From contig NW_024704783.1 of assembly GCF_018977255.1 (NCBI RefSeq), positions 124,001 to 188,000 of the forward strand: DNA of 64,000 nucleotides, in the 5' to 3' direction. Origin of the DNA: Callorhinchus milii. Taxonomy: Eukaryota. Below are positions 21,449-63,324 of the stretch, one piece after another (the stretch's first letter is position 1; each line of letters opens with the position of its first letter). Position numbers and translations under genes: made by a program. The notes under the pieces were generated by a model. It did not search any database, was not told where the DNA came from, and saw nothing but the letters and a program-made list of their open reading frames with translations.

Positions 21449-23988
21449 ATGATGAGATATCACAACTTTTCAGAAAAGGTGTATAAACCAGGCACACTAT
21501 TCAAGATAATGTACATTTACTATCCTTTACTGGCTGCTATTGGTGTTCCAGGAACGTCTTCAAAAAATAAATTCAAATCATGTGTTGCACTAGAATGAAA
21601 ATATACTCAAACTATTCTGGTTTGGCAGCTATTGTCACAAATGGAGAGGGAGAATATATACTACATGGAGATTTCTCTTACTTGGTTAGTTTATTTATTT
21701 TATTTGCATTTCAGTGGGAGCCAAGTTTGATTATTTTATAGATGATGATCTTAAAATAACTGACAGAAATTCGGCTCCTAATTGAAGAAACTAAGATTAC
21801 AGTTTGTCAAATTCTAAGTATCGAAACCACTGTCTACAAATACGGACCCAGCTACCAGATCTTCTCCGTTGTGGCTTTCATATTACCATATATATTTATA
21901 TCATAGGCGGAGAGCATTCCGTGTCTGCATTGTCTCTCAGCAATCTAATAACAACTGCCCGAAATTATATTCATACAGCTTGAAGACTTTTTTCGTCAGA
22001 TAGATATATTATATTAGTATTGTCCAAGACTCAAGTCATATCGGTGCATATTCTATATATGTGAATATACATGCTTTCATCATTTTGTTGGAGATTTTTC
22101 AAGCGCGTACATTGAAATTTGTTGTGTATGTGCAATCTGTAGGCGAAACGCAGCCAAATTGAGACATCAGAGTAACTTACAAATAGCCATGAATGAATGA
22201 TGAACAGTTGTTCTGGAAATGTTTGCCAAGAGACAGGGAGAAACTCCCTTTTATTTTCCAAAGTGTCGCAGTATACTTAAACGTTTACCTGAATAGACTT
22301 TAGCTTCTGTTGTTCATGTTACATGCGGAGGAGCGAACTTCTGAGAATACAACACCTCCTAAGCATCAAGCAGCATTTTTTTTTGCAGGTCATGCAGCAA
22401 CAATGCAGAGAGGAATGTGTGTTAAACATTCAGGTCGTCAGTACAAAGCCTGACTTGAGACTGAACTGAAGCTGAATAGAAATTGGAATTTTTTTTGCCA
22501 TATGATATTTTATCCGTAGAATAGAAACAGATTATTTTATTTCTGGGTAATATATATGAGGCTGATATTATCTTGTGGTTTATATATTGGAAGCGATACA
22601 GGTGTAAATGAAATAGACCAGTTTACATCATGTCAAAATTGTTGGATTCTTTACGAAGGATTGACCTATTTGTGGAGTCCTGTATCTCAGTGGTAAGAGC
22701 ACTCGCGTTGGAAGCGAGAGACCTGAGTTCAATTCCAGGCAGAGTGTGAAACCCTGGGCAAGTTTCCTTACTCCACACGCCTAATAATAATCCTTCCAAA
22801 AACCAAAAACAATAATAAAATTGGTCATTTTTCAATCTACGACTGTTTGTGGGACATTGCTGTGCGCAATTGGCTGCCGCTTTCGCACACAAATATACAG
22901 ACAATTCACTTCACAGTTTGTTCTGTGAAGCACTTTGTGACCTCCTCCCGACGTGAAAAGCGCTACATCAAATGCAAGGATAATTATAATTATTATATTA
23001 TTATTCTGCCATGATGCTACATTTGTGTCAATACCATGCTTCTGGTTTGAATTGGGCAGCAATTGACCTATTTCTTTCTTACAGTTTAGTTAATTGCGAT
23101 CGTAATCCTACGCTCGGGGAAGGTGGGGGAAGCTTTGGTCTCTCCAGATGTATCTCTCGCTACCTTCTGTCCGCGTCAGCAGCCGATCAACTCGTTATTG
23201 TCAGCCATGTGATATTGCCTCGACTAAATTATCTTTATTTCCCAATTTGCTTCCTGGAACTCACTCCCGTATGTTCGCTCGGAACTAGTCTGCTTTGTGC
23301 AGCCAGTTACTTATCTGTGTGGCTAACAGACGTCTTCACCTTTGATCGCTTTGTAGCCATTTGCTGTCAGAAGCTCAAAAAATATTGCACCGAGAGAACA
23401 GCGGCTGTGGTGATAGGAACAGTTTGTGCATGGAGCTGCTTCGGAAAAATTCACTGGTAATTTACTGATCAACCTTGGTAAATAATTGATAATTTGCCTT
23501 GGTTCTGCAAGACAATTGAAAGCGTTTATGGTTCATGGGCCTGTGAGGTTTTTTCCTGGTCTCACACCTTACTAACCCCTTTTGTTTCCTTCGTTCTGAT
23601 TTTGATGCTCAACACCCTGACAATCAATCACATATTAGCCGCTAATAGAGACCGCAGATCTTCTCGGCCACAAAAGCACCGAAAATTTTAATGACTCACA
23701 GATGTTCAACAGGAAAAAATCCATCGTAATTCTTTTCTCTATATCCGGGAGTTTTATAATTTTGTGGACAATCATTTTATATTTTTTCTACAGAAGATTG
23801 TAAATTATTATATTTACTCCGGCTACACTGATCCAATCTATGTTCTGTATGAAACTGGATGCATGCTGCATCTTCCCAGTAGCTGCACAAACACGTCTAT
23901 TTATGCTTCGGGCCCGGCAAAATTCCGAGATGAATTGAAAAATGGAGGAAAATATCCCTTAAAATTGATACGCAAATTGTTGCAATAA
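21449..23988 (+). pseudogene. GPR139/GPR142-like class A GPCR pseudogene (G1)
   Basis: Exon 1 21449-21551 (MMRYHNFSEKVYKPGTLFKIMYIYYPLLAAIGVP) has a mutated donor (GA). Exon 2 from 23085 contains GLSRCISRYL, FTFDRFVAICCQKL, LTPFVSFVLILMLN, RKKSIVILFSISG and SCTNTSIYA, with several frameshifts and stops. Confidence 0.9.
22663..23003 (+). mobile_element. Full-length tRNA-derived SINE in the G1 intron
   Basis: Family head, core and ATT tail. Confidence 0.9.
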
Positions 23989-24574
23989 TGAGAAAATGCT
24001 GCCCCAAATCATACCTGATTAGACAAATAGTTTGTGCGTATAAGTGCATTATGCCTTTGCTTCTGTCCAAAGGGCTGTGCAGCCCCTATGCACAACTCTG
24101 CTGCCCTGTCGGCGACCAGGAACGGCACCACGTCTTGGCTTGGCCTCAATGGCTCCCTATGGATTGAGTTCTCTCGTAAAGATCCCGCCCTTGTATTGAC
24201 CCACCGATCTCTGAAACGGCATTCCCTCACACTAACAGATATGTTCCTTTCGCTCACTCGGCACTGTTCGACTCCTTCGCACCCGCTCTGGCCGACCCAC
24301 TATAATCGTTTGACGTACCAGGAAATTTGCGCAAACTCTCTGTTACTTCTTTCCCAATTACCACCAAATTGCTCCCTCTCACTCCTCAATTTAAGTTTGT
24401 TCCCTAAAGGCAGTTTGACTGTTTAGATAAATAAGCAGATTTCAGAGTAATTCAAAGTAAATGTTTTAGATCTTACACTCAAACTGTCCATTGTATGTCC
24501 ACAGCATCTGACCAGGAGCTTGATGGTCCATTCTTTGCCATCATTTCCCGAAGTTCAGTCATATTCTACCTGCT

Positions 24575-25050
24575 ATTGATCGTTTCCATCCGCACGAAAG
24601 TCACTCCACTGACTCACCATCCGCCAAAGGATCGAGTTCAAGATCCTGGTCTTCACCTTTAACGTAATCGATGGCCTTGCCCCCACCCAACTCTCTGACC
24701 TACTGACTCTGTAACAACCTGATAACTCCCTCCGTTCAGCTGTCTCCGGCCTTCTGCATGTTTCTCGCCCGACTCGCCCCATCGGTAGCCGTGCTTTCAG
24801 CCCCCATAATCTGGAAGGCCATTCCATGGTCCCTCGCTTGCTTCCTCCCTGGCCTCCTTTGAAGACGGTCTGAAATGCCTCCTCTTCGATCGTGCCTTCG
24901 GTCGCACTCCCACCTCTCTGGCTCCCTCTCCCCTACACCACACCTGGCCCATGCTCGCTTCCTGAATCCTGACAGTCCAGCAACTTGCGACGTCCTCCCG
25001 ACGTGAAAGGCGCTCTATGAATGCAATTTTGTTGTTATTGTTGTTGTGTG
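24575..25050 (+). mobile_element. L2 LINE 3' end, diverged
   Basis: CACTCCACTGACTCACCATCC..GATCGAGTTCAAGATCC.., with tail GACGTCCTCCCGACGTGAAAGGCGCTC and TTG repeats. Confidence 0.8.
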
Positions 25051-28046: not shown

Positions 28047-31000
28047 TTACCTTGTTTTTATGATGTTTTTCACCATTAATTTAGCAATGACATTAAGTGG
28101 ATAATCTAAACCTTTCTTCAGTTCCTCTCTGAATTTAGTCTGCGTCAATGCATAAATACAAGAGTTGGTAAAGCAACTCAAACTTGCAAGCATGATTCCG
28201 GTTTCCTCGACGATATACCGCACGTTGGTGACAAAAGTTTCGCTAACAGTATAATTGGAAAGTTGCCATTTCAAAGAAAATATAACATTTGTTATGCGTA
28301 ACAGTATAACACTGCCTGATACGGCGAAGAGTAAAACGATGGATTTTCTGCGGTTTTCCAACTCTGGATCAATTGTTTTCCCAGGATTTCTCTGAAACCG
28401 AAGGCTCCTGCGAACTTTACTGGCCATCAGAATGTGTCGGATAATAAGAGTATTGAACAGACAAATCAGTGCCAAACCAAAGACGGAACCAATAACACGG
28501 TGAAGCCTCTCAAACGCTTTCCAGGCTGCCAAGGTATAATAGTTTGATTTGAAGACACAGTACCACGGGTTATCGTTAATTATAACATAAGGATCAAATG
28601 TAAAGTACCAGGGAATGCTCACTGAACAGCTGAAAACAGACAGAGTTACAATAACCACTGTGGCCGTTCTCTCTGTGCAATATTTCGTTTTCAACATTTG
28701 ACAACAAATGGCTACAAATCTGTCGAAAGTGAAGGCAACAGTAAACCACACAGAGCAGTGGACTGTTGTAGATATCAACACAACAGTTAAGCTACACACT
28801 GGGGTATAGAATAAGAAATTTAATGGGAAATACAGGTTTTTAATTTTGTTCAACAACACATCTACAATGATAACGAGGAGATCCGCCGTTGCCATAGCTA
28901 TCATGTAGCGAGTGATGTTCTTGGAGAGACCGCACTTTCCTCTTGATAGGATCACAATCGCCAGAAAATTAACTGCGCGAAGCAATAGCAACAGAAAGCA
29001 TCATTTAGATTAATACAGTTTTTTTTCTAAGTGTAAAGCTGTAATACATTCCACTGAGTTGCCTTTGAATTGTCTCACACATGCTCTCACACAAAATACA
29101 GTAGGTGCAATTTAGATCGAATCATATCAAGCGTAAAATGTCGTCCTCAAAATATTTGTTGATTATTGAAAAGGGAAACTGTTAATTTGCATAAAATCGT
29201 GTGATTAGAAATGTAAATGTTGGGAAGTGTTTTTGCAACAGTTACTTCAATTACTTTCGAACTCTATAAATATCACATAATATTTGCACGTGTCATTCAC
29301 GTATGACGAATATCTTCACCTTTGGTAATTCGCTAAGCGGTATCGAATCACCAAAGCATTTGGGGATAGCAAATTTGGGCATAACTTTACTTGCCTCTTC
29401 TGATTTCTTCTCACCACGAAAAGCGCAGAATCATGCTATATTCTGAAAGATTGGTCACATCTGTCAAGTGCACAGTACCTCTACTAATCTACAGCAAGTG
29501 GCGCAATACTCAAAGTGAAAGGAGTTTCTTTTACTATTCATTAATTTAGACAGCATTTTAAATATTAGATGAAATATGTAAAGCAAGAAAAGTCGAATAA
29601 CATTTCGATAAGTTTGTGTGATTATTGGCCATCCGAAGTCCCGGCAGAGTGAAATCTTGGGCAAGGTTTCTTAACCCTCACGCCTGATAATATTCCCTTA
29701 TGGAAAAAAAATAGCAAATTTCTCACTTCAATCCAAGACTGTTTTTTGGATACTGTTGTGTGCCAATGGCTGTCGCGTTTCCCTCACGAATATATCGTCA
29801 ATTCAGTTTGAAGTATATTCTGTGAAGCGCTTTGAAACGTCTAGAAAACGCAATAAGGCGCATTCTCAAAAGCAAGCATTACTATTATTCTTGTTGTAAG
29901 CTCAACTGATCATTGAATTGTATGACTGAACGCTCGGAGAGTTATATATTATTGTCCACTATTGTTAATGTGACATGCAGTCCACAGTACTCTTCTCCAT
30001 ATATAATAGAGATGTAGAAGGCCAGAAATCACCAATATCAGCAAAGAGATTTGAAATATCCGTTTTGCAAGAATTTTTTTGACAAGACGGAAGCCAACGT
30101 GTTTGGCTCTCGTCATCGTCTGACTTGCCCTAAAACTCTCTGAACCTTGGCGTCAGGTTCGACCCCCAAATATCCTGTCTCCCACGCATGCGGTCCCTCA
30201 CCAGCATCGCTTTCTTCTACTTCCGACCCATCGCCCGTCTCCGCCAACACCTCGCTCCGAAAGCTGCTGAAACTCTCGTCCATGCCATTGTCACCTCTCG
30301 GCTGGACTATTCAAATGCCCTCCTCGCCGGCCTCCCAACCACCCCCACCCCACCCCTCCACCTCCAAATATCCTTAAAATCCAGATTACACAAACCTCTG
30401 CCGCCCGCATTCTCACCCGCACCAAATTCCGCTCCCCGATCATCCCAGTCCTCCCAGACTGCACTTTCTGCCTAACCCAGAGAGGATCGATTTCAAGCTC
30501 TGAAACCCTCCGACCTCTCTGACCGTCTCTCTCCTCAAAAAAGTACCCGCTTCCTTCGATTCACCGGGTCTGACCTCCTCCTTGTACCCCGAGTCCTCCG
30601 TTTCACCCTCGGCGGCCGATCCTCCAGCTACTGCGACCCTAGGCACTGGAAATGCCTTCCTCACTCATTTCGCCTGCTCACACTCTTCCTATTTCGGGTC
30701 TCGGCTGAAGACCTTTCTTTTCGACCGCGCCTTTGGTCATCTTCCTCCCCATCCCTCTGGCTCCTCCCCGGGATCCGTTACTGTGAATGACTCTGAATCG
30801 CCGTCCGGCGTGGAGGGCGCTATATAAATCCAAGTTGTTACTTGACGTATGTGGCATTTGCCATAAAGCTTCCAATATATGGCTCAATGTAACATGTTAG
30901 CGAAACGCAGAAATAATCAACTCCTCTCCAAACAACCCAACTGGTTGAAACACCACGAATGCTCAGTAAACTGTCTCCGTGATGCGCAATCGACGTAAAT

Positions 31001-31307
31001 CTTTCGAAATCATTTGAAATCTTTCATCGCAGCCCTTTCCGTTTCTGACGCAACTTTCATGTACTTGTGCACCGGCACTGTTCTGTACATTATCGTAAAC
31101 TGACAGTCAATATATACGCTTCAGCTTTTTTCTCTATCAACTTCAATAACCTGATATGTCACTTTAGAAAATGTCTTCCGCCACCCATTGCAGTAACTTG
31201 TTGAATATTGCTGGTAAATGCGACCAAATAGACCTACCAGGAATTCCAACTACTACAAGTGTGGGGTAGTACATAGCTTCTATTGCATACAGCGTTGCGC
31301 GTTCCAT
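28047..31307 (-). CDS. Intact GPR139/GPR142-like class A GPCR (G2), 331 aa
   Basis: Exon 1 31307-31238 (70 nt, MERATLYAIEAMYYPTLVVVGIP, G|GTAGG) plus exon 2 28972-28047 (926 nt) gives 996 nt open. Seven hydrophobic segments, with GxPVN, MATADLL, FTFDRFVAIC, RRKSIVLLF and CFTNSCIYA. AATAAA at 27725-27730. Confidence 0.92.
30130..30842 (+). mobile_element. L2 LINE 3' fragment (different subfamily) in the G2 intron
   Basis: PIARLRQHLAPKAAETLVHAIVTSRLDYSNALLAGLP, with an L2-type tail. Confidence 0.85.
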
Positions 31308-32124: not shown

Positions 32125-34893
32125 ATCTAAAGGACATCACTTGCCCTATCCCCTTAATCCACTGGCTCTTTCCCCTCCTTTGAGCACCTCACCTTCTCCC
32201 ACCCCTCATTCTTCTCCCTTAAAATCCTCCTCTTCTACAGGCCCCCTGAAAACTCTCCCCCCTTCATCTCCGACATTTCAACACTCCTCACATCTCTTTG
32301 CATCTGCTCTGATCGCCGCATCATCCTGGTCGACTTTAACCTACACTTCTCCCCCTCCTGCTCCATCTCCACAGACTTCTCTTCCCTGCTCTCCTCACTC
32401 AACCTCTCCTTACACATCAACTCCCCCACTCACAGTCACGGCCACCCACTCGATTTGGTGATCACCCGGGGCATCAGTGTCTCAGATGTGACTATTACAC
32501 ACAAAGCCATCTCAGACCAATACTTCATCTCCTTCTACACCTCCACCCCCCTCCCCACCTCCACCAGATCCACCACCATCTTCTACCGCCCTTGAAAGAA
32601 GTTACCCCCACAATCCCTACCCGATGCCTTGGAGTCCTCTGAACTCCTCTACCTCTGGCCTTCAACCCTCACCGACCCCTCTTCTCCTCTCTCCCTCCTC
32701 CACAATACCCTCTCCTCCACACTCGATACTCTTGCCCCATCACTTCCAGCACTGTCTCCTACTCCCGCTCCTCCCCCTGGTACACCACCCACCTCCGCTC
32801 ACTGAAAAGCCAGGTGCGGGCTGCTGAACGCACCTGTGTCAAATCTGGCCTAAAGGTCCACCGACAAATCTGGCTGGACCTCCTCAAAATTTACGGTTCC
32901 ACTCTAGCCTCGGCCAAGTCGTCCTTCCACTCCATGATAATCCTGGAGGCGAAAAACAACCCCAGGCTACTATTTTCCACCACAACCGGACTCCTCCGTC
33001 CCCCACGCCACCCCGCGCAGGTCATCTCCTCCAACCTTCACTGCGAGGAGATGCTGGATTTCCTTGAATCCAAGATCAAGGGAATTCGCTTCGCGGTCAC
33101 TTCCCCTCCGACATCCACCAACGCCCCACACGCTCACTCCCACACTACGACTGCTACCCATCCTCCCTATTCACTTTTGTACCCGTTTCCCCACCCTCTG
33201 TCACCAAACTCATCCTATCCCTAAAATCAACCACCTGCTCCCTTGACCCCATCCCCACTCCAATCCTTATCTCCCAGCTCCACTTTCGTGCCCCACATAT
33301 CAACGACATCATCAACCTGTCCCTCTCCTCTGTCTCTGTCCCCATTCCCTTAAAAACTGCCACCATCACGCTCAACCTGAAAAAACCCTCCCTTGATGCG
33401 TCGCAGCTACCAAGCTACCGGCCCATATCCAACATCCCCTTTATCTCCAAGGTCCTGGAAAGAATTGTCGCCTCCCAAATGCGCTCTTTCCTTTCCACCC
33501 ATTCTCTATTCGAACCCCTTCAGTCAGGTTTCCGTGCTGCCCATAGCACAGAAACTGCCCTGGTCAAGGTCACCAATGATATCCTGACCCTCTGTGACCA
33601 GGGCTCCCTCTGCCTCCTCGTCCTCCTCGACCTATCGGCAGCATTCGATACGGTCGACCACGCTATCCTACTCCACCGCTTTTCCTCCCACCCCAACCTT
33701 CAAGGCACTGTCCTTGAGTGGTTTAGGTCGTACCTTTCTCACCGTCTTCACTTTGTCTCGACAAATGGCTTCTCCTCCACCCCCCGCACTGTCTCATGTG
33801 GTGTCCCTCAGGGCTCTGTCCTCGGACCCCTCCTGTTCACCCTCTAAACGCTCCCCCTCGGTGACATCATCCGCAGACATGGAGTTAAATTCCACATGTA
33901 TGCGGTGACACCCAACTCTACCTTTCCTCCTCTACTCTCAACTCCACGACCACCGATGTCCTGACAGCTGCCTGTCCGACATCGAGTCCTGGACGAGAGA
34001 CAACTTTCTTCAGCTCAACGTGCGAAAAACCGAGGCCCTCCTGATTGGCTCACGTCAGCGCCTCCGCACCTCAGGCGCCGACACCATCAGCATCCAAGGC
34101 TGCACTCTCCACCACTCAAAGCCATCAGGAGCCTCAGCATTCTGTTCGACCCTGAGCTGTCCTTTCTCCCTCAGATACGCACCACAACTGGCACCGCCTT
34201 CCATCACCTCCGGAACATCGCCAGACTACGGCATTACCTCACCCCTCACACTGCTGAAATCCTGGTCCACGCCTTTGTCAACTCAAGGCTGGACTATGGA
34301 AACTCTCTCCTCGCCGGCCTTCCCCGCCACCTCCCTCCACAAGCTGCAGGTCATTCAGAACTCTGCAGCTTGTGTACTGTCCCGCACCAGACACCGCGAC
34401 CACATCACTCCCACCCTCGCTCGCTTCCACTGGCTCCCCATCCCCCAGAGGATTGATTTCAATATCCTCATCCTCAACTATAAGGCCATCCACGGCCTTG
34501 CTCCCTCCTACCTCTCCGACCTACTATCCCCCTACTTGCATGCCCGTACCTTCCGTTCCTCTGGCTCTGGTCTGCTCCACATCCCCCGCCCCAACCGCCC
34601 TACCATCGTTGGCCGGGCTTTCAGCCTCTCAGCCCCTCGGCTCTGGAACTCTATTCCCCAGTGCCTTCGGCTTGCTTCCTCCCTTTCCTTCTTCAAGGCC
34701 GGTCTCAAGACCTTTTTCTTTGATCGTGCCTTCAGCTCCCCTCTCGACTCTCTACCCCCTCCTACCTCGCTCCCTTCCCTTCCCTCACCCTGACCATTTC
34801 TCCCTTGCTCGGTTCCTCACCCAACTGTGCAGCGCCTTGGGACTTCCTCCCGACGTGAAAGGCGCTCAATAAATGGAATCTTGTTGTTGTTGT
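32125..34893 (+). mobile_element. L2 LINE, about 2.8 kb, inactive
   Basis: Endonuclease remnants (IILVDFN, HGHPLDLVIT, ISDQ) and RT motifs ([47 protein letters not shown]). The YADD codons carry a 1-nt deletion and there are further stops. Intact (TTG)n tail. Confidence 0.95.
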
Positions 34894-35329
34894 CTCTCTA
34901 TGTAATAGGCATTTAGAATACGATAAAACACGAATATCGGGAATAATATATTTAAAATCCATGTCACAAGAAATTATTTGATGTATGGAGATTTTGTTAC
35001 ATAACTTCCACAATATGGCTCAACGTGATACGACAGATTCACAAATAATCAGCTCCTGTCCAACTATCCCACCGTATTGAAAAGCATAAGTCGTATGTCA
35101 ATTTTGTGGTCTATTCAAATTTGGAGAACATACAACAGAATTAGAGAAAATTATAGCACAATGGAACCAATCGGCCAATACATTCTCACCAGCTCCCAGG
35201 TGTGGTCTGCATTCAGTTTTACTACGCTGGTTAGCCTAACACTTTTCAGGCTCTATTATTTACATATTTACCTAATTTCCTCTTTAATCCAAAAATTGGC
35301 TGTGCCTCAATCACACTACTGGGCAGGGC

Positions 35330-35720
35330 ATTTGAAATCCCAACAATATTATGTGTAAATGATCACGAAAAGCTCTCTATTCCTCTCTTCTTGTGACCGT
35401 TTTATAACTTTAGCCCAAAGTCAGCGAATATCCAATGGTACAATTAATTGCTCACTGTTCATCTTTCAAAATTCATATTAGGTTACCTCCATAATGTCCC
35501 TTCTCAAGCTTCTCTGTTCCAAATAAACTGGACCTAACTTTTTCTATATTTCTTCATAACCACAGGCTTTTATCAATTGTATAATTCTTGTAAAGCTTAA
35601 TTGAACTCTCCCAAGCCTTAACGTGTTTCCCTAAAAGAGGTGGCCAAGACTGAATGTAGAACTGTATCGAGGCCTTACGTTTGGATTTGTAAAAAGGTAG
35701 AATTTTTGATGGATTTTCCT
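35330..35720 (-). mobile_element. CR1 LINE 3' fragment
   Basis: The reverse complement resembles the CR1 RT C-terminal region (QFWSP...EQRSLRRD). Confidence 0.65.
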
Positions 35721-36514
35721 GCACTTTGCTCCTATGTAAATGCGGATTTATATATATTTATATTTATATATATTTATAAATATGGAGAGCAGATTGTATT
35801 TAAAAAACACCTTCAGTCTGGCAGAGTCTCAAAATGCTGAAGTGTGCCGGTACATGACCACAATTTGTTATGAGACTGTGTAAGTGACTGTAGGCGCCAT
35901 CGAAGAGGAAGGTATTCTGTTAAGATCTGAAGAGTGGTAAGCTGGGAACACAGTGCAGGCATTGAGGCAGACAATTATGGAGTTTAGGATTGCTGGGTAT
36001 GAAACCACGGCAGCCGGTATTGGAACCAAGAGGACAACAGGCATGTGGAAGGCAAGCCAGCTGAGTGAAAGCGGGGTATACGTGTGTGGACTAAGCAGAT
36101 CGGCAAGGTAGGAAGGAGAAGGAGATGCTCAGACTTCAATTGGTTTGTGAGTAATACTGAGGACATTGGAATCGATCTTCCATGAATCAGGGCTTAAGCT
36201 GTTGGGTATGAGACATGGTCTGAGAAGAACAACGTGTCGGTGGTGAAGTCGAACGATGCTGGTCCGGTATGAGTGATGCAGAATATAGTTGGGGATCAAT
36301 CCTTCATGGAGGTTGTGCTTCTCTTTTAGGGAGCCTGAAACTATGGGACACAAATATAAGATAGAGACGATGTGATAAAAAAATAGGAAATAGAAGGAAC
36401 AGCTTCACAAAGTGATATGATGGAAATTGCTGTCTCAATCAATAATTTTATTAGATGCGCTAAAGCGGAACACACCTTAAGGTAAGGGAAAGGGAAGAAG
36501 AAGGCTAAGTGAGG

Positions 36515-36907
36515 GAGTAAAGACTCATGTTGATTATAAACGTTCTCCCGACGTGAAAGGCTCTATGCAAGTGTAATCTTAATGTTGTTGTTGTAAACAC
36601 CAGCACCGACTTGTTGATCCGATTGCCTTGTTTCCGTGCTGTATATTCTTTGTTAATTTTCTAATATTCAAATATTTCTAATATTCTAATATTCAGTCCC
36701 TAACCGCTGCCTTTGAGTCCTCTGAACTCCACTCCCTCTGGCCTTCAACCCTCACTGATCACTCTTCACCTATCACCCACTCCTCCACACTCGATACTCT
36801 TGCCCCCATCACCTCCCGTACTGCCTCCTACTCCCGCTCCTCCCCCTGGTTCACCACCCACCTCTTCTCACTGAAGAGCCAGGCGCGGGCTGCTGAACAC
36901 ACCTGCG
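36515..36907 (+). repeat. Duplicate of positions 1-394
   Basis: By-eye alignment shows 8 substitutions and one 1-bp indel in the first ~145 bp, then about 250 bp identical, ending abruptly. Confidence 0.95.
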
Positions 36908-37303
36908 GACAAAGCGAACGAAGAGATGGACAGAGTGAGAGTGAGAGGCACACATAGAAAAAGAATACAGAGAAAGAGAAAGATGCAAACAGAGAGGGCG
37001 AGATACAAAGAAAAGCAGGGACAGTGACAGATACACAGAGATAACGTTTGAGATACAGAGCGAGATACGCAAAGAGTCTGAGAAACACACACACACACAA
37101 ACACACACACATATACACACATGGACACACACAATCCCTACAGTAAAAAAACTAAATAAAACACCCAAGTGGAGAGACAGATACTCACAGTCAGAGAGAG
37201 AATGAGTTATAGAAAGCGTGAGATGAAAGCATACGTACAGAGATAGAATGAAAGCGAGAGAAGGAAGAGGAGAAAGAGAGAAAGTGATAGAGAGAGAGAG
37301 AAG

Positions 37304-37338
<35 letters not shown>

Positions 37339-38040
37339 AGCGTCAAGAAATAGGCACAGATACAGAGAGAACGTTACACAGATACACACAGACACGAAGA
37401 GGTAAAACGTCAACAAGAGTTTGCATTTAAATAACGACCTACACACGGGGTAGCTGACACAGAAAGAGAGAGATACCGAGAGCCAGATGCAGCGATACAG
37501 AGACAGAGAGAGATGGAGAGAAAGGGAGACACATACATGTAGAGACACATATATATAAAGAGAGATATGGAGACAAACAGGTAGAGGAAATGTGAAAGAT
37601 AAAGGAATAAACATAGAGTGAGACAGACCAACAGACAGACAGATCCAGAGACACACAAAGATAGACAGAGACAGATTCCGACACACACTCACTGACACAC
37701 AGCGATATAGAGAGGAAGANNNNNNNNNNNNNNNNNNNNNNNNNNNNNNNNNNNNNNNNNNNNNNNNNNNNNNNNNNNNNNNNNNNNNNNNNNNNNNNNN
37801 NNNNNNNNNNNNNNNNNNNNNNNNNNNNNNNNNNNNNNNNNNNNNNNNNNNNNNNNNNNNNNNNAAAACCATGCAGATAGCGAGAGAGAGACTCAGACCG
37901 AGAGAGCGAGAGAGACAGACTGATAGAAAGAGATAGGAAGAGAGAGATGAGAGAAAGACAGAGAGAGAGAGCGAGAGAGAGAGAGAACGAGTAAGAGATA
38001 CATATACAGAGACACGTGAGAACAAAAAGACCTACGGAAA
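36908..38040. repeat. AG/GACA-rich low-complexity tract with N-gap (37720-37864)
   Basis: Imperfect (AG)n/(GACA)n. Paralogous to 60.9-62.0 kb, including the unique right flank. Confidence 0.9.
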
Positions 38041-38505: not shown

Positions 38506-38575
38506 CAGGAACTCCAAGAGCAGCGAGAATCGGGTAGTAAATGTCTTCTATCAAAAAGATTACTGGATACGTCAT
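38506..38575 (-). pseudogene. Orphan 70-nt first exon of a GPR139-like gene
   Basis: ATG..MTYPVIFLIEDIYYPILAALGVP+G, the same length and phase as G2 and G3 exon 1, with a GC-type donor GCAAGT. No adjacent exon 2. Confidence 0.85.
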
Positions 38576-51457: not shown

Positions 51458-53192
51458 TCAAATTTTCTTAACCAATTGAAGCAACAGAGCAAATGGATAT
51501 TGAAGAATCTTCTTCATTTCCTTTCTAAACTTGACCTGAGTTACCGCATAGATGCAAGTGTTTGTACAGGAGCTCAAAAGCTGAAGCATGAATCCAGTCT
51601 GTTGGATTGTATTACGAATGCTACTTTCTTTATTTTGATAGTTGTAGTTTGCAACCGACCAATTTATCGAATAGACAACATGTGTCATCCACAAAAGTAG
51701 AAAAGTGCCCGAAATAACGAAGAGCAAAATGATGGATTTCCTGCGTTTCATCATTTCGGGATCATTCGTTTTATTAGAACTGCTGTCACCTCGGATTCTC
51801 TTGCGCGCTCTGCTGGCTACGAGAATATGTCCGACAGTCAAAGCATTGATAAAGATAATGATAACGGATACACCTACAGGATTGAACGTACGGATCAACC
51901 ATTCGTACGCTCTCCAATATGGTTAAGTGTGATAACTGGGTTTTGGTCTGCAGTATTTCGGTATATTATTAATTATCACACCAGGAATCAACATGAAATA
52001 TAATGGAATGCATTGCGCACAGCTGAGCGCACACACTGCGGTTATCACCAAACTCGCCGATTTTACAGAGCAAAATCTGTGTTTTATTTTCTGACAACAA
52101 TTGGCGACATGGCGATCAAAAGTAAAACGACTGTCAGCCAGATAGAACATCGAGTCACGGAAGCGAGCAGAACATTTCGTAGCTGACACACAGAAATGAA
52201 GTACAAGAAGCTGAAACGGAAATACATATTATTAACTCGATTCAGTAAAACATCATTGAAAATAACCATTAGATCCGCCGCTGCCATGGCCACCAGGAAG
52301 AGAGTGTCGACATTGGATTGCCCGCACCTTCCCCGGGACAGGATTACAATCGCCAACAAGTTCACTGAAAAGATGAAAAATACTGGGTTCACGTCCCAGG
52401 AGAATTGCGCCAAATCTTTCAGATATGATTGAAGATCACAGGTTCACGGACACCACCACACAAGAACAGCGGAGGAGAGCAGGCACCTGGTCTAGTGTGT
52501 GATAACTGCCAGTCACCTTATAGGCCCACACACTCGTAAAACCTCCCTCATCTTACCAATAATGCGCGGCCATGTGGCATTAGCCTCTTGTTGGCTTGCC
52601 AGGGGCCAGGCGATAGTCTCCACTGATCTCAGCCCGGCCACAATCATAGCAAAACGGAGAGATGTGGAAGTCGGCATCTCCTTAAGAAGGCAAACTAGAC
52701 TTATCCACCGAAGCCTTAAAGACGTGATGTCCAAGTGTCCACAGTACATATATATGTAAGGTACGGGGAAGTCTGCAAAATGTGAATCAAGATAAATAAA
52801 CGAAACTGGGATCTGCCCCATTCTGGAAACTAATTGACATCCAGGTCTAATGATTGTCTGTGAGAAGTTCCTCTGCACGGATGAGCTGCTTTATTCGACA
52901 ACAAAATGTACAACAACTGCATTTTACAGCACAACAAGTGAGACGTTCGGAGACAACCTGCTGATTTTAACGGCGTTATTTCAAACATAATGATTATTTT
53001 CCCAATGACTAATTTAGCAAACAGGTAAAATTGAATAACTGAAATAAACGATAGGTATGGATATGTTCGCATATTACGAGACTTTGATTTCTGTAACGCG
53101 TAGAGAACTGTTAATAACCTACCTTGTACTCCAACCAATGCAAGAAACGGGTAGGAAATTGCTTCTATTTCATATAATTTTGAAGATGACAT
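51458..53192 (-). pseudogene. GPR139/GPR142-like GPCR pseudogene (G3), recently inactivated
   Basis: Exon 1 53192-53123 (70 nt, MSSSKLYEIEAISYPFLALVGVQ, G|GTAGG). Exon 2 52364-51458 has a 1-nt deletion just before FTFDRH and an in-frame TAA at 51925-51923, and is otherwise complete (RRKSIILLF, SSCTNTCIYA). Confidence 0.92.
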
Positions 53193-54764: not shown

Positions 54765-56490
54765 AACAACAACAACAACAACAACAACAAGATTCCATTT
54801 ATAAAGCGCCTTTCACGTCAGGAGGACGTCCCACGGCGCTGCACAGTTGGGTCATGACCCGAGCAGGGGAAATGGTCAGGGTGAGGGGAGGGAAGGGAGG
54901 GAGCGAGGAGGGGGGAAATGGTCAGGGTGATGGGAGGGAAGGGAGGGAGCGAGGAGGGGGGAAATGGTCAGGGTGAGCGGAGGGAGGGGAGGGAAGGGAG
55001 GGAGCGAGGAGGGGGAAGAGAGTCGAGAGGGGAGCTGAAGGCACGGTAAAAGAGAAAGGTTTTGAGACCGGCCTTGAAGGAGGAAAGGGAGGAAGCGGCG
55101 AAGGCACTGGGGGATAGAGTTCCAGAGCCTGGGAGCTAAGGCTGAAGGCCCGACCACCGATGGTAGGGCGGTTGGGGCGGGGGACGTGGAGCACACCGGA
55201 GACAGAGGAACGGAGGGTAAGGGCAGGTAGGTAGGGGGATATTAGGTTGGAGAGGTAGGAGGGAGCAAGGCCGTGAATGGCCTTGTAGGTGAGGATGAGG
55301 ATCTTGAAATCAATCCTCTGGGGGATGGGGAGCCAGTGGAGGCTAGCGAGGGTGGGAGTGATGTGGTCCCGAAGCCTGGTGCTGGACAGTACACGAGCTG
55401 CAGAGTTCTGAATAACCTGCAGCTTGTGGAGGGATGTGCCGGGAAGGCCGGCGAGTAGAGAGTTCCCATAGTCCAGCCTTGAGGTGACAAAGGCGGGGAC
55501 CAGGGTTTCAGCAGCGTGAGGGATGAGGTAATGCCGTAGTCTGGCGATGTTTCGGATGTGATGGAAGGCGGTGCCAGTTGTGGTGCGGATGTGCGGGAGA
55601 AAGGATAGCTCAGGGTCGAACAAAACGCCGAGGTTCCTGACCGGCTTTGAGAGGTGGAGAGTGCAGCATTGGATGCTAATGGTGTCGGCGCCTGAGGTGC
55701 GGAGGCGCTGACCTGAGCCAATCAGGAGGGCCTCGGTTTTTCGCACGTTGAGCTGAAGCAAGTTGTCTCTCGTCCAGGACTCGATATCGGACAGACAGAT
55801 GTCAGGACCTCAGTGGTCGTGGAGTTGAGAGTAGAGGAGGAAAGGTAGAGTTGTGTGTCATGCGCATACATGTGGAAGTTATCTCCATGTCTGCGGATGA
55901 TGTCACCAAGGGGGAGCATGTAGACGGTGAAGAGGAGGGGACCGAGGACAGAGCCCTGAGGGACACCACATGAGACAGTACGGTGGGTGGAGGAGAAGCC
56001 ATTCGTCGAGACAAAGTGAAGACGGTGAGAAATGTACGACCTAAACCACTCAAGGACAGTGCCTTGAAGGTTGAGGTGGGAGGACAAGCGGTGGAGTAGG
56101 ATAGCGTGGTCGACCTTATCGAATGCTGCCAATAGGTCGAGGAGGACGAGGAGGCAGAGGGAGCCCTGGTCACAGATGGTCAGGATATCATTGGTGACCT
56201 TGACCAAGGCAGTTTCTGTGCTATGGGCAGCACGGAATCCTGACTGAAGGGGTTCGAAAAGAGAATGGGTGGAAAGGAAGGAGCGCAGTTGGGAGGCGAC
56301 AACTCTTTCCAGGACCTTGGAGAGAAAGGGGAGGTTGGAGATGGGCCGGTAGCTTGATAGCTGCGACGCATCAAGGGAGGGTTTTTTCAGGGTGGGCGTG
56401 ATGGTGGTAGTTTTTAAGGTAATGGGGACAGAGCCAGAGGAGAGGGACAGGTTGTTGATGTCGGTGATATGGGACAGGTTGATGATGTCG
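54765..56490 (-). mobile_element. Relatively young 5'-truncated L2 LINE (about 1.7 kb)
   Basis: Long ORF2 pieces: [42 protein letters not shown] and [24 protein letters not shown]. (TTG)n tail. Confidence 0.95.
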
Positions 56491-56499
56491 GTGATATAG

Positions 56500-57920
56500 C
56501 ACATTGGACTCTGCGTAACAGCCTGTTCGCTGCAAAACAATCTGGTCTATAAATAAGATGCCTGTTCCCTGTATAACCGTCTGATCTCCATATAAAATGC
56601 CAGGTCTGCCTGGTCTCTGCAATAATGGCTTGATGTTTGTAGAACAGTGCAGGTCTCTAGATAACATCAATGGTCACTGTATAACAGGCTCGCTGTATAT
56701 CTGCCTGAACTCAGTAAAACAAGTCTGGTATCTGTATAACCGACTGGTCTCTGTATAACATGTATAGAGGCCTGGTTTGTTTACATTACGCCTGTTTTCT
56801 GCATAACAGGACTGGTCTTTTTATAATAGGCCTGGTCTAAGTTACACTGTCCTAGTATCTGTGTAAAAGGCTGCTCTTTGTCCGTTAGCCTTGTTTAATA
56901 GTCCTTGTGTATGTGTCAAAGTATCTGGCATAGTCTCTGTATATATCGTCTGGTCTCTGCATAAAAGCCTGGTCTCTGTATAACAGACTGATCTCTGTAA
57001 AACAAGCCTGGTCAGTGTATAACAGGCCTCGACTTTGTATAACACCCTGGTCTATCTATGAAAGAGCTTGTCTACGTATGAAAGGCTTGACTCATGTGTT
57101 CCCGTCCTTGTCTCAGTATAGCAACTAGTCTGTGTATAGCTGGCCTGGTCTCTCTATAACAGGCCTTTTCTGCGTATAATGGGCCTAATATCTGTATGAA
57201 TGCCTGGTCTCTGTATAAGAGCCCTGTTCTCTCCATAGCAAACTGTTCAACTGCAGTTTGCTAGACAGAGACCAACATGCCTGTAAAACAGGTCTGGTCT
57301 GTGTATAAAATGCATGACCTTATCATAATAATAATAATCTTTGCATTCGATGTAGCGCTTTTCACGTCTTCTGGACATCCCAAAGTGCTTCACATAATAT
57401 ACTGTAAAGTGAATTGACTTTACATTTGTAGGAGAACGCGGCAGCCAATTGCGCACAGCAGTGTCCCACAAACAGTCGTGGATTGAAAATGACCAATTTA
57501 TTATTGTTTTGTTTTTTTGGAGCGATTATTATTAGGCATGTGGAGTAAGGAAACTTGCCAAAGGTTTCACCTGGCCTGGAATTGAACTCAGGTCTCTCGC
57601 TTGCAAAACGAGTGCTCTAATCATATAACAGCCCTGGTTTATATATAACAGACCTGGTCTCAGTTTAACAGACGTGGTCTATGTATGACAGTCCTGGTCT
57701 TTGTATGACAACTTGGATTCGGTGTAACAGGCCAGTTCTCTCTATAACAAGCCTTGACTATGTATAAAGTGCCTGGTCTCTGTATAAATTACCTGGTCTT
57801 TTTACAAGGATACTGGTCTTCTTTTAACAACCTGGACCCTGTATAACCGGCCTGATCTATGTATAATATGTATGGCCTCTCTATAAAAGCCTCGTCTCTG
57901 TAAAAGAGGCCTTGTCTGTG
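56500..57920. repeat. Degenerate ~21-bp minisatellite, interrupted by a SINE at about 57320-57620
   Basis: Recurring CCTGGTCTCTGTATAACAGG units over about 1.4 kb. Confidence 0.85.
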
Positions 57921-57996
57921 TATATACAGGGCAGGTTTCTGAATAACACCACTGACACCACAATCGCAATCCTGGGCAGTTACACCGATCACGAAA

Positions 57997-59289: not shown

Positions 59290-59470
59290 TCCTTCACTCG
59301 CACCTTTATTCCTGTCCGCATTGCAGCTCCACAACAATGTACGGTTGGCTCGACTGGCAACGAGAATATGACTGACAGTCAGAGCATTGAGCAGCAAAAG
59401 CAGAGAGAATGGAAAACTCGAGAGTGCCTTAAAATCAAACAATTTAAATGCTGAACATACGAGAAAAATG
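59290..59470 (-). pseudogene. GPCR fragment (TM5-ICL3) paralogous to G4
   Basis: FPFSLLLLLNALTVSHILVASRANRTL..DRNKGASE matches G4 LLLNALTVSHILVASRARSRL..DRNRGASD. Confidence 0.85.
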
Positions 59471-59965
59471 TGTTGGCTCGTTTTATTGACAACATCGTTG
59501 TATACCGTACAAACTCCCAATCGGTTATCTGTACAGCGCTTTGGGAAATCCTCCAGACGGGAAAGACGCTATTCAAATGTAAGTTTGTTAATGTTGTTGT
59601 TGAAAAGTGATATCCGACACAACGAAGTCACACACACCATCTCACACACGCATTCGCACACACACACGACACAGAAAGTATTATCCCCCACAGAAGTATG
59701 TGATTAAGGCAATTTTGCGGCTCCCAAGTACCCTTCACTCCCACAAGCAATCACAGACACATACACGGACACACAGTCAAACACAAGTAAACATATACAC
59801 ACAGATGCTGATACACACACACACAGACAATCACATACGCACATGCACAAACTCACACCCACACGCAGACACAGACAATAACCTGCACACACACAATCAC
59901 ACATACAGACAAACGCAGTGAATATAAACAGAGACGCTCACAAAGGAACACAATGGACCCATTGT

Positions 59966-60918
59966 CTATCCAGTTACACTGGTTAACCACTGGCAAGTTT
60001 GTCGTCGAACTAATCTAACAATTAGAATAAAAGGAAGTGTCACCGCTTTCTTAAGTTCCTCTCTAAATTTAGTCTGGGTTCCCGCATAAATACACGTGTT
60101 TGTGCAAGAGCTCAAAAGCTGCAGCATGTAGCCAGTTCGCCAGAAAATAAACAAAGGATCATAAGGCCCTGTGGCGTAATATATTTTTGAAACCCTCCAA
60201 TATAAGAAAAATAAAACAAATGTTATCCATAATAATATAAAATTGGCAGAAACAGCAAATAGTAAAATGATGGATTTCCTTCTGTTCCTCATCTCTGGAT
60301 CACTGTCACTCGCTCCTCTATTCCTGTCCCCATTGCTGTGTCCCCGCAATCTACTGCGGGCTCGACTGGCCACCAGTATGTGGCTGACAGTCAGGGCGTT
60401 CAGCAGCAAAATCAAAACAAATGGGAGAAACGGAGTTAAAATAATGTTGAGCGTGTCAAATACTATCCATGGGAGAGACGTATAATAGTTTGTTTTATAT
60501 TGACAACCCCACGGTATGTTATTAACTATGTTATATGGTTCATATGCAAAGTACCAGGGAAAGTTTTGCACAAGGAAGAATACACTGAATACCGCTATCA
60601 TTGTACAAGCTGTTTTTTCAGTGCAATATTTAGCTTTCAGTTTTTGGCAACAGATGGCGACGTATCGATCAAAGGTGAAAGCCACAGTTAACCAGACAGA
60701 AATTGCCCTTGTTGCACAAACCAGTGCGTTTACCAGACGGCAAACGTGAGTGATGTACACGAATGAATATGGGAAGTAAAAAGAAACTATGCGATTGGAA
60801 ATCACCCCGACAATAACCACCATCAGATCAGCCACTGACATGGTCACCAAATAGAGAGAGATACATTTGGAGAGACCGCACGTCCCTCCAGCCAGGATCA
60901 CAATCGCCACTAGGTTAG
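59966..60918 (-). CDS. Intact exon 2 of a GPR139/GPR142-like GPCR (G4); exon 1 not located
   Basis: 953-nt open phase-1 exon after an AG acceptor: ANLVAIVIL..CGLSKC..ADLMV..FTFDRYVAICC..LTPFLPF..RRKSIILLF..FILLWIT..SSCTNTCIYA, then a stop. Confidence 0.88.
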
Positions 60919-60929
60919 CTACAGAGAGA

Positions 60930-61257
60930 ATGAGAGGGAGAGAAAGAGAGAGAGAGAGAGAGAGAGACATGATCAGTCATAATGATCCATTTGTACAGTT
61001 TACATAGTGTTGATGAAATGGAAGCTGTGCGCATTCTGCTGGAGCAACAGTCGCCTTTTCCAAATCAAGTCGCAATTGTGTAGATTGAAAGGGAGAAGGA
61101 ACAAATCCTACTTCGCTCTCGGAAGCTCTCCGTCCGTTGTATGCATAGTGGTAAAGAGTTACAGTGACAAAGCTTGCGGTACAGAGAGAGATGCACTCTG
61201 TCACTTAAAGAGAGAAAGACATATATATATATATGCTTTGAGAGAGAGTGACAGAGT

Positions 61258-61288
<31 letters not shown>

Positions 61289-61960
61289 GGAGACGCAGAT
61301 GGAGTGTAATACAGGCGGAAAGAGAAAAGGAGCGAGGGGCGTTAGACACAGAGAAAGGAAGAAATACGCACAGAAGCAAAGAGGGATTGAGAAGAATGCA
61401 CACAGACCGAGAAAAGATGCAGAGCGAGAAACACGCACGCACACACACACACACAAAATCACAAAGATATTTAAAGCTAGATCCAGATAGAAAGGGAGAA
61501 AGAGGACGAGAATTTGAGACAGAAACCCAAAGACAAAGAGAGTAAAGACAACGAGCGATATAGAGACACAGTTGCAAAGACACGGAGAGGTACAGGAAAA
61601 GTGAGACAGATATATACTGAGTCCGACACAGATATACACAGAGATAGAGAGACACACACAGATATATACAGAGATGCAGTGACACACAAACATATATGCA
61701 GAGAGATATAAGGATGGCCCGACAGAGAAAGTGATACAGATCCAGGTACAACGCATACATACAGATAGATATAGAGACACAGAGAGGCACACAGAGAGGC
61801 ACACAGACAGAGCGAGATACAGAATCACCAACAGAAAGAGGTTTAAGGAGACACAGACATAAAGAGGCACAGAGAGAGAGAGCGAGAGAGATGCAGAGCT
61901 ATGCAAACAGAGTGAGACACATAAGCAGGGGCACACAGAGAGAAAGACACCTGGAGAAAA
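60930..61960. repeat. (AG)n and AG/GACA-rich low-complexity tract (G4 intron)
   Basis: Perfect (AG)n near 60940-60968 and 61255-61280, embedded in an imperfect tract. Confidence 0.9.
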
Positions 61961-62999
61961 ATACCTCTGTTATTGTTCAAAATTTGTCGAAATTTTCAAA
62001 ATATCCTTCTACATGTAATTAAAATGGAGTGAGTTTACGTAATGCAGTTACAACATTAAAAATATAGCATTTCTGTGTTACTATTGCAGGTTATATTTTC
62101 GGACGGGAAACACCAAAATACTGCTTATGTGTCCCCAGGAACCTTCTCAAATGTCGCGTCCGGCAGTCAGTTGCTAAAAGAGGGTGGATCACCCAGGCTC
62201 AAGATAATTCTTTGGACTTCAATCGACAACCTTAATCATAATAATCCTTGGATTTAAAATGGCGCCGTACCATGTCTTTGAGACGGCTCGAAGCACTTCA
62301 CAAAATATGCCAAAGTGTACATTATGCGGGTTAAACGCGTCAGCTAATATAGCCCTGCAGTAAATTTAGACTGATCAATCTGAAGGCGCGTGTTTAATGA
62401 CATTACAAATCACAGGTTGTCAATCACAAATATTTCCGTGCGTCTTCCAATAATGGAGACTGGCTCATCTGCCGTATGTAATGTTCATACAATTGCTGCA
62501 TTTTAATTGCATTATTTCTCTGGTAACGAGATACAATCTAACAAACCCTGTTGATTTCAATAACATATATTTCTCTTTTGCAATAAACATTTTTTCAGTC
62601 GCATTTAAGGCTAACAGAACGATATTAATACCTGCTTATTAACTCAATGTCAAACAGCCTTGCACTTGATAAAGCGACATCTGGGGTCGTTCAAACCTCT
62701 CAACGTGCAAGAAAGGCATTTACTGCAATGACTGTATTTTATACCAACACTGCAGGTAAACGGCTCACAGCCAGCCATAAAGTGGGTGATCATTTTTTTC
62801 CCGCAGATTTTTGTCCAGGACACCTATAAAAAACTGCTTTTCTTTTCGAGACGTCATGAAGAATTGAAGAGGCGCTACATCAAGTGGACTTAATATTAAT
62901 ATTACTACAAGACCTTAAAAAAAAGCAACAAGCCTCTCTTTTCGTTTCAAGTTTTATTTCTCATGACGGCACCACCAACAATCACCAACAATCACCAAC

Positions 63000-63320
63000 A
63001 ATCACCCTCCATCGCTGTGTGTAAGGTCTGAGATGCTACCCTATGTCAGGAGCACCGTACAAATATACTTTGATTTTGTTGTCATTCTCCATTGTGAAGT
63101 CTGGACATGGGACTGTACTCCACGATTCTCCAATTGAGAGANNNNNNNNNNNNNNNNNNNNNNNNNACAGAGTCAGGGCATTGAGGATTAAATTATGAAT
63201 TAGCGGAAGCATCGACGTTGAAATAAGGGTGATATGGTCAAACAATGCCAATCCGAGACAAGTCAAAGCTATCTTTACGTTTACATTCCCATGGTATTAT
63301 ACTAACTATGTATTCTTTTT
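63000..63320 (-). pseudogene. Decayed GPCR exon-2 remnant (G5) spanning an N-gap (63142-63166)
   Basis: LFDHITLISTSMLPLIHNLILNALTL resembles TM5 (LPFVLILLLNALTV), and MENDNKIKVYLYG resembles MENRRKSIILLF. Confidence 0.55.
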
Positions 63321-63324
63321 CAAA

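Follow-up and report, generated by a model that had tools for sequence, protein, structure and literature searches.

A tandem array of divergent class-A receptor genes in Callorhinchus milii, probably part of a GPR139-related orphan family expanded in cartilaginous fishes

The GPR139 gene has two exons (PMC7318219). Mutagenesis of the receptor placed Trp, Phe, and surrogate agonists in a pocket of F109(3x33), H187(5x43), and W241(6x48), with polar contacts to the agonists made by N271(7x38) and R244(6x51) (PMC5430874). A cartography of vertebrate G-protein-coupled receptors (GPCRs) described orphans of coelacanth, gar, and teleosts, named GPR210A and GPR210B, beside GPR139 and GPR142, in a data set without sharks (PMC6504862). 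Canonical odorant receptor genes are very scarce in sharks, rays, and chimaeras, whose known repertoire is dominated by V2Rs (PMC11979771). Here, we analysed a stretch of 64,000 nucleotides (nt) of contig NW_024704783.1 from the holocephalan Callorhinchus milii (hereafter the window), in which an initial annotation had noticed a cluster of receptor genes. The cluster is very likely a tandem array belonging to an orphan class-A GPCR family that is related to yet distinct from GPR139/142 and has been greatly expanded in cartilaginous fishes.

Receptor loci were searched by tblastn with the two long open reading frames (ORFs) and by a family hidden Markov model (HMM) of 87 database homologues, the latter against all six frames of the window. 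First exons were searched with an HMM of 74 N-termini and a regular expression, and splice junctions were checked base by base. All seven loci proposed in the initial annotation were recovered by tblastn and the family HMM. They lie on both strands within 42 kb and comprise two open genes, two pseudogenes, and three partial relics. Four of the loci, spread over 21.4-61 kb, are sizeable copies of a single class-A GPCR gene; the smaller pieces are scattered around them, and the window as a whole is rich in long and short interspersed elements (LINEs and SINEs). Four exon-1 sequences were identified by the N-terminus HMM. A tblastn match at 41411-41509 (E 0.14) was dropped since the family HMM did not reproduce it. 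The receptor features of the window are the following (TM, transmembrane helix; ECL and ICL, extracellular and intracellular loop; i-E, independent E-value).

21482..21551, plus strand: exon 1 relic of G1 (YKPGTLFKIMYIYYPLLAAIGVP); the ATG is lost at the expected site and the donor GT is changed to GA; N-terminus HMM 23.4, E 3e-6
23090..23988, plus strand: exon 2 of G1, an old pseudogene; tblastn E 1e-57 to 7e-63; four HMM pieces in alternating frames, read by three-frame translation
28047..28972, minus strand: exon 2 of G2, open, 308 codons and stop; acceptor cgcgcag|TT
31238..31307, minus strand: proximal exon 1 of G2 (MERATLYAIEAMYYPTLVVVGIP plus 1 nt); donor G|GTAGGT; joins exon 2 in frame
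34972..36224, minus strand: three blocks (36224-35877, 35636-35250, 35029-34972) collinear with the intron of Callorhinchus gene P0242 (blastn 69-79%)
38506..38575, minus strand: distal ('orphan') exon 1 (MTYPVIFLIEDIYYPILAALGVP plus 1 nt); HMM 47.7; GC donor G|GCAAGT
51458..52364, minus strand: exon 2 of G3, pseudogene; 1-nt deletion at about 52127 (WLTV|FTFDR) and TAA at 51923-51925
53123..53192, minus strand: exon 1 of G3 (MSSSKLYEIEAISYPFLALVGVQ plus 1 nt); donor G|GTAGGT; intron of about 760 bp
59305..59487, minus strand: TM5-ICL3 fragment (..LLLLLNALTVSHILVASRAN..NADRNKGAS..); HMM positions 164-224, i-E 2.9e-10; tblastn 69% identity
59966..60918, minus strand: exon 2 of G4, open to the stop; acceptor ctctctgtag|CT after a (CT)n tract
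63167..63327, minus strand: G5 remnant; two collinear HMM pieces, positions 148-171 and 172-202, i-E 0.013 and 0.0022

The copies share one gene structure. In the window, exon 1 (70 nt) encodes the protein from the start codon through some 10 extracellular residues to the middle of TM1, and exon 2 holds the remainder; the very short N-terminus reported previously is thereby borne out. A phase-1 intron splits the codon just before N1.50, and its position and phase are alike in G2, G3, G4, and a family gene of the horn shark. The scaffold motifs pointed out earlier (CGLSK, FTFDR, RRKSI.LLF, and C.TN.CIY) fall in invariant or nearly invariant columns of the family alignments. In Pfam 7tm_1, for which the gathering cut-off is 30.5 bits, G2 scores 65.8 and G4 71.4; the pieces of G3 and G1 score lower. 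An AlphaFold2 model of G4 exon 2 built with 43 homologues (predicted local distance difference test score 87.6, predicted template modelling score 0.80) displays seven helices followed by helix 8, with a beta-hairpin in ECL2; its first helix is short because exon 1 is missing. Foldseek returned 981 matches of this model in the PDB at E<=1e-3, and all of the 50 listed are GPCRs, with class-A receptors of the peptide type predominant. Since the ranking was nearly flat (E 2.5e-7 to 1.8e-6 over the top 50, with GPR139 at rank 27), it was discarded for family placement and taken to confirm the fold only. Among the microswitches, the D-R-F/Y motif is present (FTFDRF/Y) and W6.48 is kept in G4, position 6.50 is Thr instead of Pro throughout the family, and the NPxxY motif takes the form N-T-x-I-Y, with Thr instead of Pro at 7.50, where GPR139 has Phe.

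The receptor copies are 64-72% identical in DNA, their flanks are without similarity, and the other repeated DNA of the window consists of transposable elements (TEs). This degree of divergence, together with the lack of common flanks, indicates old duplicates and not an assembly artefact. In the maximum-likelihood (ML) tree, each window copy partners a different Callorhinchus gene: G4 pairs with P0002 and P0009 (support 99/94), G2 with P0241, P0242, and P0307 (100/100), and G3 with P0277 (93/62). The closest protein matches of the window genes among those listed are likewise from Callorhinchus, at 74% identity. The TE copies of the window are 91-96% identical to those on another Callorhinchus milii contig, WEZY01002705.1 (L003), which carries the G2-like gene P0242. 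Old duplicates, pseudogenes, fragments, and a spare exon 1 together uphold the earlier description of a birth-and-death tandem cluster of divergent class-A receptors.

Database searches, in which clusters were defined at 90% identity and accepted at E<=1e-3, returned 2,270 clusters for G4 and 2,475 for G2. The 197 distinct clusters that were listed come without exception from chondrichthyans, namely chimaeras, sharks, skates, and rays; NCBI calls most of them 'probable G-protein coupled receptor 139'. Heterodontus francisci, the horn shark, alone accounts for at least 60 clusters among the matches listed, on many chromosomes. A profile search of 1.84 billion representatives at 50% identity retrieved 138 clusters at E<=1e-30; the lower-scoring full-length matches include proteins of salamanders (Pleurodeles, Ambystoma, Lissotriton), coelacanth, two teleosts, and amphioxus. 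On Heterodontus francisci CM071044.1, nine paralogues with 81-92% identity lie on one strand at 109.11-110.38 Mb (L001 and L004-L011). Genome mapping of one horn-shark gene, P0018, yielded a 73-nt exon 1 (24 codons and one base), a 5.95-kb phase-1 intron, and exon 2. Exact two-exon models fitted all nine paralogues, and the introns of the eight other than P0018 measure 1.7-10 kb; a 73-nt exon 1 occurs in eight of the nine, and P0016 is annotated with 49 nt. Literature searches, in which the coverage of journals was incomplete, found no published description of this chondrichthyan expansion, and the family is mentioned neither in a catshark sensory-genomics paper (PMC11979771) nor in the whale-shark genome paper. 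With thousands of clusters and no describing literature found, the proposal of a large uncharacterised receptor repertoire holds. The genes are already in databases under a misleading automatic name, and their kind is a lineage-expanded class-A GPCR family.

The relationship of this family to GPR139 was examined with profiles, gene structure, and phylogeny. Searched against solved structures, the family profile matched GPR139 best, with 62.8 bits (E 2.4e-16) compared with 46.3 for PRLHR and 44.1 for TRHR. A ranking of PDB entries by single sequences, in which TRHR and V2R came top and GPR139 was unlisted at E<=1e-3, was not used for placement since the profile search reversed it. The true GPR139 of the stingray Hypanus sabinus has a single coding intron with the same position and phase as in the family (..CLGLP+G|gtgagt...cag|CT AAC), and the TM1 motif YY..L...G.P.N and the absence of Pro7.50 are also common to the family and GPR139/142. 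The differences are equally clear: about 24 residues precede N1.50 in the family versus 43 in human GPR139, Pro6.50 is present in GPR139/142 and absent from the family, and GPR139 is a single-copy gene conserved at 82-83% from rays and sharks to human, whereas the family consists of many fast-evolving copies. The window genes are only 19-24% identical to GPR139/142.

The ML tree was inferred under LG+C20 from 59 rows. The bovine rhodopsin and human ADRB2 sequences were entered by hand, those of PRLHR and TRHR were taken from PDB alignments, and the human GPR139 sequence, also entered by hand, was confirmed to be 100% identical to database entries. A GPR139-type superclade was separated from TRHR, PRLHR, ADRB2, and rhodopsin (100/95). 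Within it, the chondrichthyan family is monophyletic (100/99) and sister to the salamander gene P0409 (100/99); both join a vertebrate clade with coelacanth P0419 and teleost P0426 and P0448 (100/98), to which the amphioxus genes are added (95/87). The combined clade is sister to GPR139+GPR142. True GPR139 of rays and sharks groups with human GPR139, so the family forms a clade of its own in a tree that includes chondrichthyan GPR139, rather than falling inside the GPR139+GPR142 clade. The comparison of sequences thus indicates that the family is a separate ancient lineage related to GPR139/142 but is not GPR139/142. The earlier label 'GPR139/142-like' is right as to relatedness, given the profile match, the intron, and the sister clades; the low identity and the separate clade place the family outside GPR139/142 itself. 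The phylogenetic check that it had proposed against GPR139, GPR142, and TRHR turned out accordingly, with TRHR outside the superclade. TRHR and other peptide receptors provide the best single-sequence PDB match, dominate the fold matches, and have a counterpart in the ECL2 beta-hairpin of the G4 model, but TRHR and PRLHR fall outside the GPR139-type superclade in both the profile search and the tree. The salamander, coelacanth, and teleost relatives resemble the family in their short N-terminus and in the motifs FT.[DE]R and KFR.EL. The bony-vertebrate relatives are probably the GPR210A/B of PMC6504862, although the Ensembl identifiers could not be matched. These relatives are low-copy and have 23-30% identity with the window genes; that work contains no account of the chondrichthyan radiation.

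Sequence variation in the family is concentrated on the side where ligands would bind. Entropy is highest in ECL2 (2.12 bits) and lowest in ICL1, ECL1, helix 8, and ICL2. Family-wide, 23 generic class-A pocket positions average 1.78 bits versus 1.00 for the other TM positions (Mann-Whitney p=1.4e-4), whereas the corresponding values in GPR139/142 do not differ (0.57 vs 0.60). Divergent extracellular residues on a conserved scaffold, as claimed from the window alone, are therefore a property of the family. For the nine horn-shark paralogues, substitutions were counted on the ML tree by codon parsimony. The tree-wide ratio of nonsynonymous to synonymous substitution rates (omega, dN/dS) is 0.56. 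Relative to the global dS, dN reaches 1.70 in ECL2, 1.18 in ECL3, and 1.06 in the N-terminus and TM1, compared with 0.28 in ICL1, 0.18 in TM7, 0.14 in ICL3, and 0.05 in helix 8. Pairwise dN/dS among the window copies and their relatives is 0.2-0.4, an estimate of restricted value for the window copies, since dS is at saturation (1.5-1.9) in every comparison but the one with P0242, which is itself frameshifted. Average purifying selection, a tight signalling face, and a fast extracellular face are compatible with diversified ligand recognition and amount to no formal proof of positive selection.

These patterns suggest how the family may work. Its members would be ordinary G-protein-coupled receptors. 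Given the minimal N-terminus, ligand recognition would have to lie in the TM bundle and under the ECL2 beta-hairpin. That face varies by paralogue and the intracellular face is conserved, namely CGLSK in ICL1, D-R-F/Y, DPEMENRRKSI at ICL3/TM6, NT..Y, and TQTKFREELK in helix 8, which suggests that many ligand specificities may be converted into one signalling output. Such an arrangement would fit receptors that together register a range of chemical cues, whether external or internal, and a diversified ligand-sensing repertoire is plausible from the sequence patterns. The array itself changes by duplication and decay, and the spare exon 1 and the two TM5 fragments represent debris of dead or rearranged copies amid LINE and SINE insertions.

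The known chemosensory families OR, TAAR, ORA/V1R, and T2R are alike in their tandem arrays, many paralogues, and frequent pseudogenes and fragments, and also in their variable ligand-facing positions, an intracellular face that is conserved, and, between recent duplicates, an omega near 0.5. The coding regions of OR and TAAR genes are typically intronless. The chondrichthyan family differs from OR, TAAR, ORA/V1R, and T2R in that it belongs to a different class-A lineage and its coding region is split by an intron. Cartilaginous fishes have no more than a few classical OR, TAAR, and ORA genes. Tentatively, and with the balance of probability on the other side, they may have assembled a large repertoire for chemosensation, or for other sensing of the environment, out of an orphan lineage related to GPR139 that most bony vertebrates keep in one to a few copies or have lost. 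If so, the family would be an unrecognised class of vertebrate chemoreceptors, of which the window shows one decaying edge in a holocephalan. In a catshark library of brain and olfactory epithelium, no GPCRs occur among the 50 most abundant, specific genes (PMC11979771). A fast-evolving family with dozens to probably more than 100 copies per genome would be an obvious candidate for the missing chemosensory or ligand-sensing capacity of these animals. The automatic name 'probable GPR139' hides this family and invites a wrong ligand inference. Its status as a separate lineage provides a clean target list for expression and deorphanisation studies, with single-copy relatives in salamanders, coelacanth, some teleosts, and amphioxus, and clarifies the evolutionary history of GPR139 and GPR142. 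At the level of the window, the gain consists of corrected gene models for G2 (complete, with Arg6.48) and G4 (without an exon 1 in the window).

Several points weigh against the reading of an expanded family of functional receptors. The per-genome copy numbers are lower bounds taken from the matches listed. The tree contains few outgroups, namely the four receptors TRHR, PRLHR, ADRB2, and RHO, and its sister grouping of the combined family clade with GPR139+GPR142 has moderate support (92/77). Receptor function of the family is predicted from its sequences. For the nine horn-shark paralogues, the nonsynonymous excess at the 23 generic pocket codons is not significant (permutation p=0.29), and diversifying selection on the pocket itself is thus not demonstrated; of the dN/dS check proposed earlier, average purifying selection with values of at least 1 in ECL2 and ECL3 emerged, and the enrichment at pocket codons did not. 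In G2, the toggle-switch Trp6.48 is replaced by Arg (CGC at 28296-28298) and F6.44 by Val, and both changes are private to G2. From its sequence, G2 may be an atypical receptor, or an open-frame gene that has lost canonical activation and may be inactive. No exon 1 of G4 was found in 60919-64000 with the regular expression and the N-terminus HMM; it may lie outside the window or may have been lost.

These observations on G2 and G4 bring up the possibility that the whole window is dead, a receptor graveyard in which G2 is a cryptic pseudogene, G4 has no exon 1, and the functional members lie elsewhere. We regard this as unlikely, although it is the alternative that survives best. It agrees with the two clear pseudogenes, the pair of fragments, the spare exon 1, and the heavy load of LINEs and SINEs. 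G1, claimed earlier to be a pseudogene, is clearly one: in addition to the lost ATG and donor, its exon 2 has at least four in-frame stops, at least three frameshifts, and one codon deletion. G3 has exactly two lesions, the 1-nt deletion and the TAA stop, which fits a comparatively recent death, as the initial annotation had suggested. The TM5 fragment sits about 480 bp downstream of the G4 stop codon and contains the insert 'DRN.GAS' specific to the G4 clade; it is therefore a partial copy of a G4-type gene. G5 comprises ECL2-TM5 only, is 5'-truncated with a frameshift between its two pieces, and stops exactly at the second assembly gap (63142-63166; '...LILNALTL' followed by N). No homology to G5 was found on the far side of this gap, where continuity of the frame cannot be established.

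At 103 near-invariant columns of the family, G2 deviates in 20, G3 in 24, and G4 in 6, against a family median of 3 and a maximum of 20; among the homologues, Trp occupies 6.48 in 90 of 92 and Phe occupies 6.44 in all 92, which makes the private W6.48R and F6.44V of G2 the more unusual. Many of the G2 deviations, however, are common to its Callorhinchus subclade and are thus features of the lineage, the terminal branch of G2 in the ML tree (0.22) is not longer than those of its relatives (0.18-0.27), and the codon CGC is two steps away from TGG, so the Arg is not a fresh lesion. The gene itself is better preserved than previously recognised. The initial annotation called G2 intact and overlooked its exon 1, which completes a two-exon gene with a start, 331 open codons, consensus donor and acceptor, and a 5' flank conserved in Callorhinchus: the spliced product has 331 residues, the intron of about 2.26 kb contains LINE and SINE pieces, and P0242 has homologues of both the proximal exon 1 and its 5' flank in its own exon 1 and 5' flank. 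For G4, the lack of an exon 1 in the 3 kb upstream is offset by its small number of deviations and by the shark introns of up to 10 kb, given which its exon 1 may lie beyond 64000. An ATG-initiated start of the G4 ORF ('MSLSLSLSL') was rejected because it is read-through of the intron. A partly decayed section of the expanded family, probably with functional members, remains our preferred reading of the window.

The neighbourhood of the array gives rise to a second alternative, in which the family is a repertoire of immune-cell receptors for chemoattractants or danger signals and is not sensory. The genes concerned are the following.

4882-9150, minus strand: TRIM-type gene, with a RING and B-box exon at 8647-9150, a coiled-coil ORF at 7042-7842, and a PRY/SPRY (B30.2) exon at 4882-5355
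12382-12746 and 14918-15170, plus strand: two germline V segments, most similar to T-cell receptor (TCR) alpha/delta V domains

The first V segment has a canonical recombination signal sequence (RSS) at 12708-12746 (CACAGTG, a 23-nt spacer, and ACAAAAACT), and the second has a heptamer and a nonamer with a spacer of 19 nt, so the cluster adjoins a TCR V-segment region. Adjacency to TCR alpha/delta-like V segments with RSS and to a TRIM gene would suit receptors of immune cells, as would C3aR and CXCR2 among the best Foldseek matches and one paralogue automatically named 'C-C chemokine receptor type 3-like'. Such linkage is nevertheless weak evidence, since mammalian TRA/TRD loci are flanked by olfactory receptor genes without an immune role, and the Foldseek ranking was flat. 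An immune repertoire is thus improbable, more so than a dead window.

The remaining biological alternative makes the genes co-orthologues of GPR139/GPR142 that, like these, detect aromatic amino acids (Trp and Phe) or related peptides; the ligands are those inferred in the initial annotation. In its favour, no solved receptor is closer than GPR139, both groups have the intron at the same position and in the same phase and lack Pro7.50, and the NCBI name points the same way. The two differ at the agonist site. F109, H187, R244, and N271 are invariant in 13 GPR139/142 sequences, and of the five site residues, the 94 family sequences keep only W6.48. The replacements are variable: Y/S/F/R/H for F109, D/H/S/N for H187, Y/N/F/Q/H for R244, and Y/N/F/K for N271. 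At these four positions, in the same order, G2 has S, H, N, and I, and G4 has C, N, F, and Y. With the agonist-site residues replaced, the aromatic-amino-acid hypothesis is left without sequence support. Since a separate true GPR139 with 82-83% identity to the human protein exists in rays and sharks, the transfer of Trp and Phe as ligands to a lineage at 19-24% identity is not supported, and we consider co-orthology very improbable. A mis-assembly of collapsed or falsely joined copies around two N gaps, one beside the spare exon 1 and one truncating G5, is scarcely credible, as the copies differ by 28-36% in DNA without common flanks and each pairs with a different Callorhinchus gene, the order and orientation across the first gap match an independent Callorhinchus locus, and the complete genes and pseudogenes lie far from the gaps.

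The independent locus is contig L003, whose alignments with the window are the following (window positions).

38542-38500: exon 1 of L003, 84% identity
36224-35877: intron block 1, 69% identity
35636-35250: intron block 2, 70% identity
35029-34972: intron block 3, 79% identity
29015-28075: exon 2, 78.7% identity
31941-31129 (region of the proximal G2 exon 1): 5' flank and exon 1, 70.8% identity

According to this collinearity, the distal exon 1 and the DNA downstream of it resemble the front half of a G2-type gene. The distal exon 1 encodes a perfect N-terminus of the family and would splice in frame to G2 exon 2, and a LINE and a second copy of promoter and exon 1 lie between the two. The family HMM gave only noise matches in 34.9-38.5 kb, and no exon 2 belonging to the distal exon 1 was found there. 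The distal exon 1 may be what is left of a tandem copy whose exon 2 was lost, or it may serve G2 as an alternative first exon. The first assembly gap (37720..37864) lies 640 bp downstream of it, in GA/CT-rich low-complexity intron DNA, and no receptor coding sequence spans it. The order and orientation across this gap match the paralogous Callorhinchus locus, and neither gap breaks a receptor frame relied on here. The gap sizes are estimates only, so the gaps may hide the rest of G5 or an exon, still unassembled, downstream of the distal exon 1.

Young LINE copies are present at 1-394 and 36515-36907 (97.7% identity over 394 nt) and at 33296-34818 and 54943-56471 (91.5% over 1.5 kb), one of them between the two exon-1 sequences upstream of G2, and reverse-transcriptase ORFs (RVT_1) were identified at 33479-33847 and 55722-56540. 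Long GA/CT-rich tracts at 36828-38059, around the first gap, and at 61065-61936, in the G4 intron, give rise to long ORFs that are spurious and abound in S, L, C, and V. On L003, P0242 (8073-11415) is annotated as 'probable G-protein coupled receptor 142'; its exon 2 is frameshifted and bridged by an artificial intron that removes 23 residues, and from its sequence, it is probably a pseudogene or an assembly error. At the end of the same contig, 21199-21415 on the minus strand holds the 3' part of a G4-like gene with 79.7% nucleotide identity to window 60007-60223, which makes a G2-like and a G4-like gene neighbours there too, in the opposite relative orientation.

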